DNA from: Pelomyxa schiedti
Taxonomy: Eukaryota; Protista; Evosea
Direction: 5' to 3'
DNA length: 64,000 nucleotides
Assembly (NCBI GenBank): GCA_020536535.1
Contig: JAHLWZ010000526.1
Span: forward strand, 96,843-160,842
Shown: positions 18,772-63,475 of the stretch, piece after piece
How the letters are laid out: each line of letters begins with the position of its first letter
How positions within the stretch are numbered: the first letter of the stretch is position 1
The notes under the pieces: model-generated
Told to the model about the DNA's origin: nothing
Databases searched by the model: none
Seen by the model: the letters and a program-made list of their open reading frames with translations, nothing else
Program-made: the position numbers and the translations under genes

Positions 18772-20082
18772 TCAGGCGAGTGGGAAATAAAGAGGGGCAA
18801 CAGTGTGGTATAGGCCAACTTCGGCGTCTGTGAAATTGGCAAAAACAATCCTATCTACCTGAATCGAGAGGTGAGGTCAAAATACCTGGACATCAACATA
18901 CCTTGGTTGCGTTGTCTCCAGTTTCTAGCCAGGTCCTAACTGCGTGCAATGCAACCGAACACGCTTTCTCGGCTGGATATCCGTATATCCCAGCGGAGAT
19001 TCTGGGTTTCATTAAATTTATAAAGAGAGGAAGGTGCCATACCCACAAAAGGCCTGTATCATGGGAAGATGGGACGAGGTAGTTTAGTACGAAAATGAAC
19101 TCAAAGAATTGTACCAGGGTTCTCAAGCGATGAGAGTCAATGAAACTTAGGCAAGTGTTGTAACAAGATAGAAGTAGCTCTTGGTTTTCGCCTTGTGGAC
19201 CCACAGTATGCAAAACATCTGTTAGTTAGCATAAACGGCTACTTTTCAGTGATAAATGTTCATACACTTGGCTGGCAACTTATACCCTTTGGTTATTTTT
19301 GTTTGACCTGTCTCACATCGTCCAATTGCCCGGCACTCACTCTTCAAATGTGGCCCAGCGGCAGCATGAATAGCGGCATCAACTATACCGAAACAATGTC
19401 AAGAGACCCCAGTGCATAATATCACCCATACCTCCACCGCCGCCACTGAGGGTAGCAGTTGCAGCATTCACTATGGCATCACCTGTATTATGTAAGGAGG
19501 GAAAAGGACAAGCATTTCAAAGTAGAACGCATTCTTATTAGATGAACGAAACCTTTCCTTGGAGATTCACAACTGCAAAAGTGGTTACGCAGGTTAGATA
19601 GAAAGTGCTGGTAGGTTATCGTACCACTTCCGTGAAACAGAGCAATCTTACCGTTGAGCAGTGGATTTGGTGCATAAGGGCCTCCAATGATAAGGCTCTT
19701 TGGACATTAAGAAGAACACATGACATAATATGGACAAGTTCACCTGCACCGCCTGTGGTTTCATCAATTTTGGCGGCACTTTGATGCCGGGGCTCTTGGT
19801 GCTACTTTTAGTTGGTTTCGCGGCAGCGGATGCCGTTGTTTTTCCTTTTGCGGCAGTGCCACCCGTGACATTTTTCCCCGTTGTTGTTGGTGTTGCATTT
19901 GCGTTTGCAGTAGTAGCTGTGGTAGTTGTCGTGGTGCTTGCATTATTGGGCTCACCGTCGTCTACAGCGTGCAATGTGTGCCAGTCTATTAGATCTGCCT
20001 ACAGGGAAAACCTTATCTCGTGACCCCCAAAAAAAACGAGAGCCGAAAATACCATCGGCGTCACGGTTCCTTGCCATGCCAT
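18772..20082 (-). CDS. MacroD-type macrodomain (ADP-ribose-binding) protein with altered active-site residues
   Basis: Spliced [40 protein letters not shown]...[18 protein letters not shown]...[13 protein letters not shown]...DRIVF. Confidence 0.9.
19483..19557 (-). other. Putative non-canonical GA-AG intron (75 nt) in the macrodomain gene
   Basis: CAAG|GAAAGG...AATACAG|GTGAT. Retention gives an in-frame TAA. Only this boundary gives a gap-free match to the macrodomain GDITKLEVDAIV strand. Confidence 0.65.
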
Positions 20083-58556: not shown

Positions 58557-59043
58557 GTGCAAGCTCAGTTTCCCATTTACTAACATTCTACAAAAAACAA
58601 AGGGAAGGCACAGCAACCGCAACATCACCACCAACAGCCACAACAGCACCAACAACATCAACAGAGGCAACAACCACCGAGGCATCAAATAGCAGCTAAA
58701 AAAAAATGATTCGAGGCAAAAAACTTGCTTATTCGTCCGAAGCAGTTTGAAGAAGCATTTTCTTCGTGGAATCCTGAAAAACAGAAGTCGGTTGGGGAAG
58801 TGTCGTTGGGAGTATGGGACAAACACGTGTGTACTTTGGTTACGAGAGAACCGACCACCAAAAAAAAACTCACCGGTGCTTTCATCACACACAGATGGTT
58901 CGAGGGCTAGGCGCCTGAATCAAGGTACCGCGCCTGTATATCAACGTTCAGGGTCGTCGTCGTCGTCTTCTTCGTCTTCTTCATCGGCATACAAAGGTGT
59001 GAAGGTCCGATTACCCAATCCCAGTGGGCCTGGAAACGGTGGG

Positions 59044-62000
59044 ATGGTTGATTACGCAGCTGCAAACGCGGCTATGGGCACTAGTACTTTCAGCGGGACC
59101 ACAACCATGATGGGTGGAAAGAAGAGAAGTAGTAGTAGCAGCAGCAGCAGCAGCACGGATACATCTTCTAGTGGAAGCGATAAGAGGTGGGGAGTTGGGG
59201 CGTGGAAGTTGTCGGCAAAGGCATCCCAGCTGTCAAGATGCATCACCGAAATTGAGATTGAGGCCAAGATTATGGACTTGTGTGCAGAGGTGAAGATGGC
59301 ACAGACGTACCAGAATACGACGGGCTCTCCGATTGAGGCTGTGTAGGAACCCTGTTGTTTCGGTGGAACAATTTTTTCCCTTACCTTTCTTCAGATACGA
59401 GTTCCCTCTTTTTGAAAGTCTGGCTATTGTAGAATTCATTGCTGAAATCAATGGAAAAGAAATTGTGGCCAAGGAAAGTCAGTTTTCACCAACCTCAAAA
59501 TTCACGTCATCATAGTTGGAAGAAAAAACCAAAGCTGTCAATAAATATGACGATGCCATTGTGTGTATCTTGTGTTAAAGGCATTAGCTCATTCATTCCA
59601 AAACAAAACAAAACAAAAAAAAAAGGCTTCAGGTTTGTTTACCAGTAGGTAGTTGGATTTTATACTCTTCACAGGACACGGGGCATTCCTTGGGGAAGTG
59701 TCAAATGACAAACGCAAAATGTTTAAGATCTCCGTTGGTTATTCTCAGTTTGAAATGGTTTTCTTCTCTTTTAACATTATTTAGGAAACTTACCTGTCGG
59801 ACAAACAGCCAAAAGTTTTTCTCTTTTTGTTGTTGAATGCTCATTGTTGTTTTTCTAGTAACAATAACCTGTGTGATGGAGCTAGAAACAGACCTAGAGG
59901 ACACCATATTTTCACTTCCTGTGGGGCTTTTCCCACGTGATCCTGTCCCTCTTTCAATCAAGATGTTAGTAATGACAACATTCCCCATCAAGGATGTTGT
60001 GTGTACTTCGCATTCAGATACATTCCAGGTTTTTCAGTACTTGCCTCTATTTCATTGACGTCACATCCAGATCCTTCCATCAACCAACCCTTTCCAAAAA
60101 GAAGCAATTTGGAAGGGAGCACATGGTACTCAATCAGAAAATTCCATTACCTATTACCAACAACACAGGACTCTGGGGCAATTCGTTTGAATGTAAAATA
60201 TCTTCACGGGAACAGCATAGACCAGCTGCTGCTATTGAAAGTGCCCCAGATGGTTCACTTGCTGCACTTGTTACATTTTTTCCTAGCTGGGCAAATATAG
60301 ACTCTGATTTATTGGAGCCAAGTGGAGAAATAGTGTTCCTGATAGATCGGTAGTTCTCGAGCACTTTGATTTTCATTCATTGGAGAAGGTCTGGGTCAAT
60401 GGCTGGCTCCTCCATCTCTAAGGTTTCTGAAACAATGGCATTATTTTTGCGCAGTCTACCTATGGATTGCAAATTCAACAGTTATCTTCAACATCCACTT
60501 TTTTAATTGTCTTTACCAAAATGAAATCAGTTGTTGGATTTGGTGATCGCTTTGAAAAGCTTTTTCCAACTAGCATGAAGTATGATGATACAAGTTTACA
60601 AAATGCTTTAAATCACGTTCAAGATCTTAAGGCAAATTTGGGTGGAACTGGTAGGCACCTTGTTCTTTACTTTTGTCTAATCATTCCAAGAACTTCTTGC
60701 ACCTTTGCTTAATGTGTTGACTGAGCCAGTAGAGGATGAGTACCCGAGACAGGTAAAGGAGCTTTGCGAATCCAACTCAAGTACTCTAATACCTGTAAGG
60801 TGTTTGTTTTGACTGATGGTGCCGTTTCTAAGAGAGAGGCCACAATAGATGCAGCTGCCAAGAATTGTCAAAGAGCCCGAGGTAAATTGTCTGATTTTGT
60901 CTACCATCTCATTTCACATCAGTGTTCACGTTTGGAATTGGCACGGGGGTTGACCAAACTCTGGTCAGTGGACTAGCTGCAGCAGGAAGAGGAAAAGCTG
61001 AGTTCATTACTGAAACCTCACAAATAAAAGAGAAAGTACAGCATTCCTCTATTACCACTCTTAATTTTTTTTCCAGGTCATGTTGCAGTTGCAGGTTTTT
61101 CAATACTATTGTAACCATGTCAATAATTTACACATCAAAGCGAGCACTGGAACCTATGATGAAGCAAGTCACGATTAACTGGCCCGCCCATCTACATTCC
61201 TCACAGGCCCCCACCCATCTTCGCCCTCTTTTTAGTGGCGAGAGATTATTGGCATATGCCATGTTTCCACCTGGTGAAAATTTATGGAGCTTTTCCTCAA
61301 AATCACTTCCAGTTGTTCTCAGTGGTATTGGACCTGAGGGAACTCCACTCTCTTTTGAAATACCACTTGAAGAAGGTAAGAACATTGACTTTTTTAAAAA
61401 TTGTGCCAAACTTATGGTTCCCTTTAATAAGGGCGACTCATCTACGGCCAAACAATTCACCGATTGGCGGCAAAAGTCTTGATACGGTATGGAAAAGAGG
61501 GAAAAATAACGAAAATAATCAAAGTGAAAAGGGAAATGGAAGAAACTATTCGTGGGTCTTCAAGACCAGATTTGAATGCACAAATTTTGGACCTCTCTCT
61601 AAAGTGGAATGTAGCATCTTCACTCACTGCCTTCTCAGCAGTCGATAAAAGGTACAGACTGCAACTAAATGGACTTGGGTTGATGTAATATAAAACAGAT
61701 CAGAGGAGACTCTTGGGAGCATGAAAACTATTACCGTCCCATCAAGCTCAGGTAATATTGGCCTCCACCCTTTTATTTCTCTTTTACAAACAGATAAAAA
61801 GTTCCACCAAGGAAAGCAAGTAAATCATCTACAACTTCTACCAGTAGTAGTTTAAAGAAGCGCATTATTTTGCCCACTGTGGCTCCGCCAAAACTCAAAG
61901 CTTCCTCTTCTTCCAGTTCATCTTCTAGTGGTCGACAATTTCTATTTTTCTCTTTTCAGTACTAAATAGCAATAGGAAAGGTGAAGGCAGAGGTCTCTTT

Positions 62001-63475
62001 GCCCCTTCCCAAAGTTGATGTCAAGGTTGAGGCCAGAAAGTCCCCAGGATTCAGATTTGGCTTCTCAGGAAAAGGCAATGCATCACAGAACCGACCCACA
62101 ATTGGGGCTGGTATCTACAAAAGCGGAAGCAGCAGCAGTAGCAGTGACGTAAAATTTGCTGTGAAAAAGCGTGGAACAGCCAGAAAATTTGGCCTGGGAA
62201 GACACGGCCACAGCAAAGCTGATGTCAAGGTTGAAATCAAGAAGCCCTCAGTGAGGGTTGAATATGAATCTGGAGGGAGCAAAAGCGGAAGTAGAAGCGG
62301 AAGTAGATGTAGAAGTAGAAGTAAAAGTACAAGTAGAAGTAGAAGTGGAAGTGGAAGTGGAAGTAAGAGTGAGAGTGAGGCCAAAGCTGATGTCCGGGTT
62401 GGAATCAAAAAGCCTGAAGTGAAAGTCAGTGTGGAAGCACAAAAGCGGAAAAAAAGCAAATCTGAAAGCAGCACTGATAGCCTAGTGGCGAAAGCCAAAG
62501 CAGATGTCAAGGTGGCAGTGAAAAAGCCTGAGGTGAAAGTGAAACTTGGACTTGGGAAAAAGACATCCAGCAGCAGTCCCCTGAGAGGAAAATATGATGT
62601 CAAGGTTGATGCCAAAGCGCCCAAGGTTGAGGTGAAAAAACCTGAATTGAAAGTGGGGTTTGGATTTGGGAAAATGAAACCCAACAGTGGGAGCGAGAGT
62701 AGTTCTCCAGTACTAGCCAAACCTTCTCTCAAAGCCGATGTCAAGGTTGAGGTGAAAAAGCCTGAACTGGCAGGGAAAAAGAAATCTAGCAGTTACAGCA
62801 GCAGTAGCACTAGTGCCCCTCTAGAAAAAGTCAAAGCTGGTATCAAGATTGAACTCAAAGCTGCACCGGCTGGAAAAAAGGATGGGGGTCTGTTTGGGAG
62901 GAAAGGAGCTCCTCTCAAAGTTGAAGTAAAAAAGCCCTCAGTTGGGATCAAAGCTGAAGTAAAAAAATCTGAGGTCCAAATTGGACCCGATGTAAAGGTT
63001 AAAGCCAAAAAAATGAGTAAAAGTACTAGCAGTAGTGGAAGTGGAAGTGGTGGCAAGCTAATCAAGGTTACCATCCCTTCAGGCGTTTCTAGACTCACCC
63101 TGGTATCTAATACCTTTCCCCTCCCCACTATTCTGAAATAATTCCCAGGAAAATGTAATATCCAAGCAACAAGCCAATGGTACCTGGGACATTGCAGCAG
63201 TAACATCACTCCTGGGGGTTCCAGCATCCACCATAGAATCCGTGTGCCCCCTTGAGGCCTATGGCCACGGAAGAGACCAACTGTGGTGCACAGTTCTGAT
63301 GGTGTCACTCCTGGAATCACTGTTCCAATCTTCAAAGACAAACTGGGCTCTGCTGGTTCAAAAGGCAAGGAAGCAAGTCATAAGGCTCAAGGACAGTGCA
63401 AATATCGGTAGGGATGTGGACCTGTATACCCCAGCTGCTGTGTACATAAAATCCCTCTCGCTCTCTGTTTCTTAG
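59044..63475 (+). CDS. VIT + vWA domain protein (VWA5A-like) with a Lys/Val/Ser-rich repeat insertion
   Basis: QTYQN..SPIEAVYEFPL, YDDAIASGHGAFL, VGNLP; MIDAS motifs FLIDRSGSM, LGGTEL and VLTDG; FTFGIG, IHRLAAK, QQANGTW. Confidence 0.9.
59474..59515 (+). other. Putative non-canonical GA-AG intron (42 nt) in the VIT-vWA gene
   Basis: GCCAAG|GAAAGT...CATAG|TTGGAA. Retention ends in TAG. Removal gives GKEIVAKLEEKTKAVNKYDDAI, gap-free against the VIT consensus. Confidence 0.7.
62031..63010 (+). repeat. Coding repeats: about 6 copies of AAAGCNGATGTCAAGGTTGA... (KADVKVEVKKPE) interspersed with Ser/Gly-Ser tracts
   Basis: Copies near 62031, 62215, 62383, 62497, 62590 and 62731. Confidence 0.85.

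Follow-up and report, generated by a model that had tools for sequence, protein, structure and literature searches.

The GT (or GC) at the start of an intron is among the most conserved signals of eukaryotic genes, and is enforced by gene finders. A gene of the amoebozoan Pelomyxa schiedti raises the question of whether a spliceosome may accept GA at this position instead. In this gene, a 42-nt interruption that is bounded by AAG/GAAAGT and CATAG/ (slashes mark exon borders) and includes an in-frame TAG was proposed, from the DNA letters alone, to be a GA-AG spliceosomal intron, along with the suggestion that this lineage accepts GA donors when the flanking U1 pairing is strong. We evaluated this proposal in the 64,000-nucleotide stretch of DNA surrounding the candidate (hereafter the window), which represents the end of contig C526 of the P. 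schiedti assembly (G000), as well as in public RNA and DNA contigs and across the genome. Such an intron would be unusual: GA donors are, as the sequence-only reading held, extremely rare in most genomes, with 14 of 222,263 introns in human (PMC5714493) and exceptions in Eurytemora and Oikopleura, and the P. schiedti genome paper reports 149,016 introns of which 98.41% are GT-AG and 1.59% GC-AG, with one GT-GG only (PMC8887013).

The candidate lies in an intron-dense gene encoding a VIT domain followed by a von Willebrand A domain (Table 1), as identified through exon-by-exon Pfam matches, with which the alignment of genomic paralogues agrees. These searches and alignments used exons one at a time, and each exon's VIT or VWA_3 match alone falls below Pfam's whole-protein cut-off. 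The letters of the interruption (GAAAGTCAGTTTTCACCAACCTCAAAATTCACGTCATCATAG, running from GAAAGTCAG to CATCATAG) are exactly as had been claimed: exon 2 finishes with ATT GTG GCC AAG at 59473, exon 3 opens with TTG GAA GAA at 59516, and the in-frame TAG occupies 59513–59515, inside the intron. A branch-like TTCAC is found ~13 nt before the 3' end, and among the 20 introns of this gene, 42 nt is the commonest length (4 introns). At the other end of the gene, the long last exon (61981–63141) codes for a tail rich in Lys and Ser, in which KADVKVEVKKPE-like units are repeated, and displays 3-nt indel and SNP alleles among runs (62043, 62137, 62155). Searches with two exon/ORF queries returned no match to an ortholog of the VIT-vWA gene, the probable reason being the length window and fragmentary gene calls.

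Table 1. Features of the VIT-vWA locus and further GA-AG introns (window positions, except where a contig is named)
Feature	Position	Strand	Details and evidence
VIT-vWA gene, intron-dense	59200–63100	+	Exon-by-exon Pfam matches and paralogue alignment
Exon ending at 59342	to 59342	+	Pfam VIT profile 1–33, E 0.0021
GT-AG intron, 52 nt	59343–59394	+	TGT/GTAGGA...TTCAG; modelled from VIT alignment (profile 1–33 before, 35–60 after)
Exon 2	59395–59473	+	Encodes (V)YEFPLFESLAIVEFIAEINGKEIVAK; residues 1–26 match VIT profile 35–60, E 0.003; RNA contig without differences
GA-AG intron, 42 nt, phase 0	59474–59515	+	AAG/GAAAGTCAG...TTCACGTCATCATAG/TTG; sequence, RNA contig X3 record 7, DNA contigs X1 and X2
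GT..AG alternative, 45 nt	59478–59522	+	Not observed
Exon 3	59516–59560	+	Encodes LEEKTKAVNKYDDAI; paralogue alignment and RNA contig
GT-AG intron, 65 nt, 5' of 7-nt microexon	59561–59625	+	RNA contig joint 59561 to 59672, CTT between
7-nt microexon GCTTCAG	59626–59632	+	A, S, and first base of G; RNA contig; fills 3-column ASG gap of paralogue alignment
GT-AG intron, 42 nt	59633–59674	+	CAG/GTTTGT...TTCACAG; RNA contig
Exon, VIT continued	59675–59737	+	Encodes (G)HGAFLGEVSNDKRKMFKISV(G); paralogue alignment; RNA contig reaches its start
Remaining gene (vWA part)	60029–61975	+	14 GT-AG introns of 39–56 nt with RNA support in X3 and X4
Exon in vWA part	60533–60649	+	VWA_3 profile 40–78, E 6.6e-4
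18-nt microexon (VMLQLQ)	61077–61094	+	Flanked by GT-AG introns (41 and 46 nt); present in X3 and X4
RPB1 GA-AG intron, 41 nt	C197:7506–7546 (L060 1612–1652)		AAG/GAAAGC; bridge helix
RBX1 copy with 48-nt GA-AG intron	C918:8690–8824 (L028)		ATG/GAAAGG

The protein sequence flanking the candidate intron was compared to other members of the family, for which at least 35 VIT loci were found in the genome. When the two exons were aligned separately to seven paralogues, the peptide of exon 2 abutted that of exon 3 with no gap or overlap. Exon 2 ends at position 60 of the Pfam VIT profile, while exon 3 alone, a 20-aa query and thus too short a piece, yielded no Pfam match. Across the junction, EINGKEIVAK/LEEKTKAVNKYDDAI pairs ungapped with the uninterrupted paralogue FINDKHIVGVVKEKEQAHKEYKEAI, and the exon 3 peptide also displays an ungapped match to paralogue VKEKEQAHKEYKEAI. 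The two closest paralogues both include a phase 0 intron with a GT donor at this very position (C842: IVGK, AAG/GTACTC...CAG/LQEK; C681: ITAQ, CAG/GTGCCG...TAG/IKEK), which indicates that the GA intron sits at an inherited position. In the same two paralogues, the codons of the microexon are continuous with the next exon, so that the intron at 59633–59674 is specific to the present copy, and was either gained here or lost in C842 and C681. Another intron, which follows ...FIN and lies 7 codons 5' of the GA site, is common to one group of VIT loci.

Next, we evaluated whether this segment is removed from transcripts. Four public runs from one study contain the locus, two of them DNA-like (X1 and X2) and two derived from single-cell RNA (X3 and X4), and all are available as contigs, not reads, in which rare variants drop out and from which splicing efficiency is not derivable. 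The predicted junction GCCAAG-TTGGAA was present in one RNA contig from X3 (record 7, 273 nt, 0 mismatches): this contig passes from 59471 directly to 59514, skipping 42 nt, which corresponds to the removal of 59474–59515 and leaves GCCAAG/TTGGAA as the spliced product. Two letters at this joint fit either side, and the boundaries could also be AG..AT or GG..TA. This single contig, with a k-mer depth of 3.37 and from one single-cell run, constitutes the RNA support for the junction, which X4 does not reach. Since it also includes both canonical splices flanking the 7-nt microexon, the contig derives from spliced mRNA. The 52-nt intron at 59343–59394 is kept unspliced in this contig as well as in X4 record 11; a k-mer contig can chain reads from different molecules, and the order of splicing is therefore not inferable from the X3 contig. 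A 160-nt contig from an RNA run is also collinear with the genome over two modelled introns (59768–59909), and such unspliced pieces in RNA libraries represent either pre-mRNA or genomic DNA carry-over.

At the DNA level, the A at position 59475 held at contig resolution, being kept in contigs from both X1 (depth 42) and X2 (depth 14) that span 58900–61930. Their only differences from the window are a G>A change at 61085 and the insertion of AAATG at 61666, which shows that they do not simply reproduce the window assembly, although they carry the same A. The joined form lacking the 42 nt was found in neither DNA run. Both alleles at 61085, a position located inside the 18-nt microexon, are expressed (G in X3, A in X4).

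Two further GA-AG introns were checked by homology, and are located in genes for invariant proteins, RPB1 and RBX1. The RPB1 intron (TGYIQRRLIK/GAAAGCTTC...GTTGTTTAG/AMEDVQCKYDGTVRNS, with acceptor GTTTAG/AMEDV) offers no usable GT. Where RPB1 has GA, its two paralogues among the polymerase large-subunit genes (C123 and C698) display a GT donor, and a relative in ENA ERZ21831265 (L071 1735–1771) has a 37-nt GC-AG intron (AAG/GCACAG), so that this one site is occupied by GT, GC, or GA depending on the gene and organism. The RBX1 intron (CAICRNHIM/GAAAGGCTT...CTGTAG/DLCIECQ) interrupts one of three RBX1-like genes, and another of these copies (C489, L026) includes a GT-AG intron with a GTAATA donor exactly at this position; the flanking CRNHIM/DLCIECQ is invariant between these two copies, with many silent differences between them. 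All three verified GA donors share G at -1, G at +1, A at +3 and +4, and G at +5, while the exon before them ends in AAG in two cases and in ATG in RBX1, so that an upstream AG is not obligate.

Elsewhere in the window, a macro-domain gene on the minus strand includes a candidate 75-nt GA-AG intron (19483–19557, AAG/GAAAGG) after a 15-nt microexon. A 72-nt GT..GT pair at this position also remains in frame and gives the typical GDIT...DAIVNAAN macro-domain spacing; because both the GA..AG and the GT..GT removal keep the frame, this candidate was left out of the verified set. In a screen of AG/GNAAG sites with open-frame joins across 192 kb, 25% of T sites passed compared to 29–39% of controls, the exons being too short for an ORF-only filter. 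A GA-AG candidate in a desulfurase gene was also looked for in locus C918, and was not located there.

The two internal GTs of the VIT-vWA intron (59478 and 59482) shift the frame when paired with the AG at 59515, as the sequence-only reading had pointed out, with introns of 38 and 34 nt. It had also identified correctly the sole canonical in-frame pair, from GT 59478 to AG 59522, as one that loses a VIT residue: this 45-nt removal skips the first AG and yields IVAKEKKTKAV, one residue shorter than IVAKLEEKTKAV, which leaves a one-residue gap relative to all paralogues. By the loose standard of this genome, GTCAGT at 59478 qualifies as a donor, and with one low-depth RNA contig covering the junction, the 45-nt pair may have some minor use. 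However, that this pair represents the normal splicing event, and the GA-AG junction a rare mis-splice caught in assembly, seems very unlikely, as the 42-nt junction is the only one seen (no 45-nt joint was found in the two RNA runs, X4 not being over the junction) and the GA introns of RPB1 and RBX1 have no canonical alternative. The transcribed allele could also really be GT if A59475 came from a mistake in the assembly, or from a variant that the RNA-providing cell did not carry: RNA and DNA were obtained from different cells (samples S2 and S1), the locus is polymorphic at 61085, 61666, and 62043, and a minor GT allele might drop out of contigs as rare variants do. This we consider very unlikely, since the A is found in the window assembly and in two Logan DNA contigs with the other 61085 allele, and since the GAAAG donor recurs in two unrelated genes.

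Non-canonical RNA-seq junctions are often artefacts, and a 2-nt repeat (AG) does flank the 42-nt deletion. The joint might be due to template switching by the reverse transcriptase, or to the k-mer assembly having jumped from one short repeat to another. Such a technical origin is nevertheless highly improbable here: the microhomology amounts to a minimal 2 nt, the deletion preserves the frame, takes out a stop codon, restores an ungapped VIT alignment, and coincides with the intron position used in paralogues, and the same X3 contig includes two canonical splices. Finally, about 90 minor introns are reported for P. schiedti (PMC10639083), and the RNA libraries include unspliced, DNA-like pieces, which would leave room for a U12-type intron or for an RNA contig originating from an intron-less DNA allele. 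Either of these is hardly credible, however, as the donor is GAAAGTCA and neither the U12-type donor [AG]TATCCTT nor the branch motif TCCTTAAC was found within 59474–59515, while the joined form is missing from the DNA runs and the X3 contig carries the microexon splices as well.

We thus consider that 59474–59515 is very probably a genuine U2-type spliceosomal intron with a GA 5' end, located at an inherited position, and whose excision keeps the VIT domain intact. The observations behind this reading are the sequence itself, its precise excision in RNA, the GA in DNA contigs, the fit to homologs, the recurrence in RPB1 and RBX1, and the lack of a compensatory U1 (see below). Excision joins IVAK to LEEKTKAV, while in a retained intron the in-frame TAG would end translation.

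To understand how such a donor may be recognized, we examined its pairing with U1. About 25 U1 genes (L001–L025) were identified with three different 5' arms (AUACUUACCUG, AUACAUACCUG, and AUACGUACCUG), and a pattern search detected the U5 arm in 8 genes, the A5 arm in 9, and the G5 arm in 2. Standard and A5 U1 genes often form divergent pairs ~150 nt apart. The AAG/GAAAGT donor forms 7 of 9 Watson-Crick pairs with the canonical arm, which equals the best GT donors on this arm, compared to 6 pairs for either the A5 or the G5 arm. The 19 GT donors of the VIT-vWA gene are very degenerate (3–8 pairs, with AAG at +3 to +5 in one only), and only 7 of the 19 reach at least 7 pairs with any U1 isoform, consistent with the earlier description of this GA donor as stronger than most GT donors of the gene. 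The broader suggestion, that the lineage accepts GA donors when U1 pairing is strong, stood in its first part, given the RNA contig, the homology, and the RPB1 and RBX1 introns, and only partly in its second: the verified GA donors form 7 (VIT-vWA), 6 (RPB1), and 5 of 9 (RBX1) pairs with canonical U1, an ordinary range for this genome, so that strong overall pairing is not their common factor. At the U1 5' end, which had been singled out as informative along with U6, no compensating U was found: arm position 7 is an A in all 25 U1 copies, a genome pattern search for an arm with T7, i.e., able to pair with the +2 A, yielded 0 matches compared to 19 for the A7 control, which together rule out a compensatory U1 variant, and the U6 box is the standard ACAGAGA.

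Based on these pairings, the standard U1 (AUACUUACCUG) would pair on both sides of a single A.A mismatch at +2, i.e., at -2, -1, +1, and +3 to +6, while with the A5 and G5 isoforms, +4 would be mismatched as well. The feature common to GA donors may then be contiguous pairing to U1 positions 4–6 and 8–9 around the mismatch, which would point to the standard isoform. Since every verified GA donor has AAG at +3 to +5, the class probably depends on this isoform, a role suggested by three donors of which some were found by looking for this motif. Later steps, involving the U6 ACAGAGA box and the active site with U5 and Prp8, would also have to tolerate an A at +2. As for the RPB1 and RBX1 introns, the absence of any nearby GT means that they must be constitutive. 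More tentatively, it is possible, if rather less than probable, that P. schiedti harbors a systematic class of constitutive GA-AG introns with the signature G/GAAAG, numbering hundreds or more and including some in single-copy essential genes (RPB1), which GT/GC-only annotation could not record, which would be read by the standard-arm U1 among the three isoforms, and in which +2 would evolve freely.

To our knowledge, every eukaryote accepts GC donors, whose C at +2 can keep a weak C.A contact. GC-AG introns, at 1.59% of P. schiedti introns (PMC8887013), resemble the GA-AG introns in being normal U2-type introns apart from a non-U base at +2, although an A at this position is far rarer. The closest known systems are found in animals: GA and GG donors jointly make up ~10–12% of introns in Eurytemora affinis, and GA is common in Oikopleura dioica too (PMC5714493, PMC7072748). 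As in P. schiedti, these introns are U2-type, with G at +1, A at +2, an AG acceptor, A at +3, and usually G at -1, and they are found in ordinary as well as conserved genes, where they are missed by GT/GC-only annotation pipelines. However, they represent 3–12% of introns in these animals compared to three verified cases in P. schiedti, and Eurytemora requires the upstream exon to end in AG whereas the P. schiedti RBX1 donor follows TG. The P. schiedti cases further differ by AAG at +3 to +5 in all three, in an amoebozoan with three U1 arm isoforms. A GA 5' splice site is also known from human FGFR1-3 (Brackenridge et al. 2003, as summarized in PMC5714493 and PMC7072748). According to these summaries, it is an efficiently used GA donor that, like the present one, matches U1 well at other positions, with a canonical GT located 6 nt upstream, compared to 4 nt downstream here; there, however, the GA donor is an alternative site dependent on the neighboring canonical site, while the RPB1 and RBX1 introns of P. 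schiedti have no nearby GT. Among the papers searched, none reports a GA-AG intron for Archamoebae, in line with the sequence-only reading, or for any other amoebozoan, and the Mastigamoeba genome paper does not mention them. GA-AG introns are already known elsewhere, and the P. schiedti case is, as far as this search found, new for an amoebozoan.

Overall, these results indicate that an amoebozoan precisely removes introns starting with GA, one of them located within the bridge helix of RNA polymerase II, and extend the tolerance of an A at +2 beyond the two animal lineages in which it was described. At least two essential P. schiedti genes include GA-AG introns that are unrecorded in the published annotation, and the published gene set must hold broken or mis-spliced models at GA-AG sites. 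With its three U1 isoforms, very degenerate donors, and short introns, P. schiedti thus represents a natural system in which to study how position +2 becomes dispensable, through contacts with U1 positions 4–6, U6, and U5/Prp8. The interest of these introns would grow with the size of the GA class. Should this class be systematic, recurrent GA donors would be known from a third eukaryotic lineage, and for the first time from a protist.
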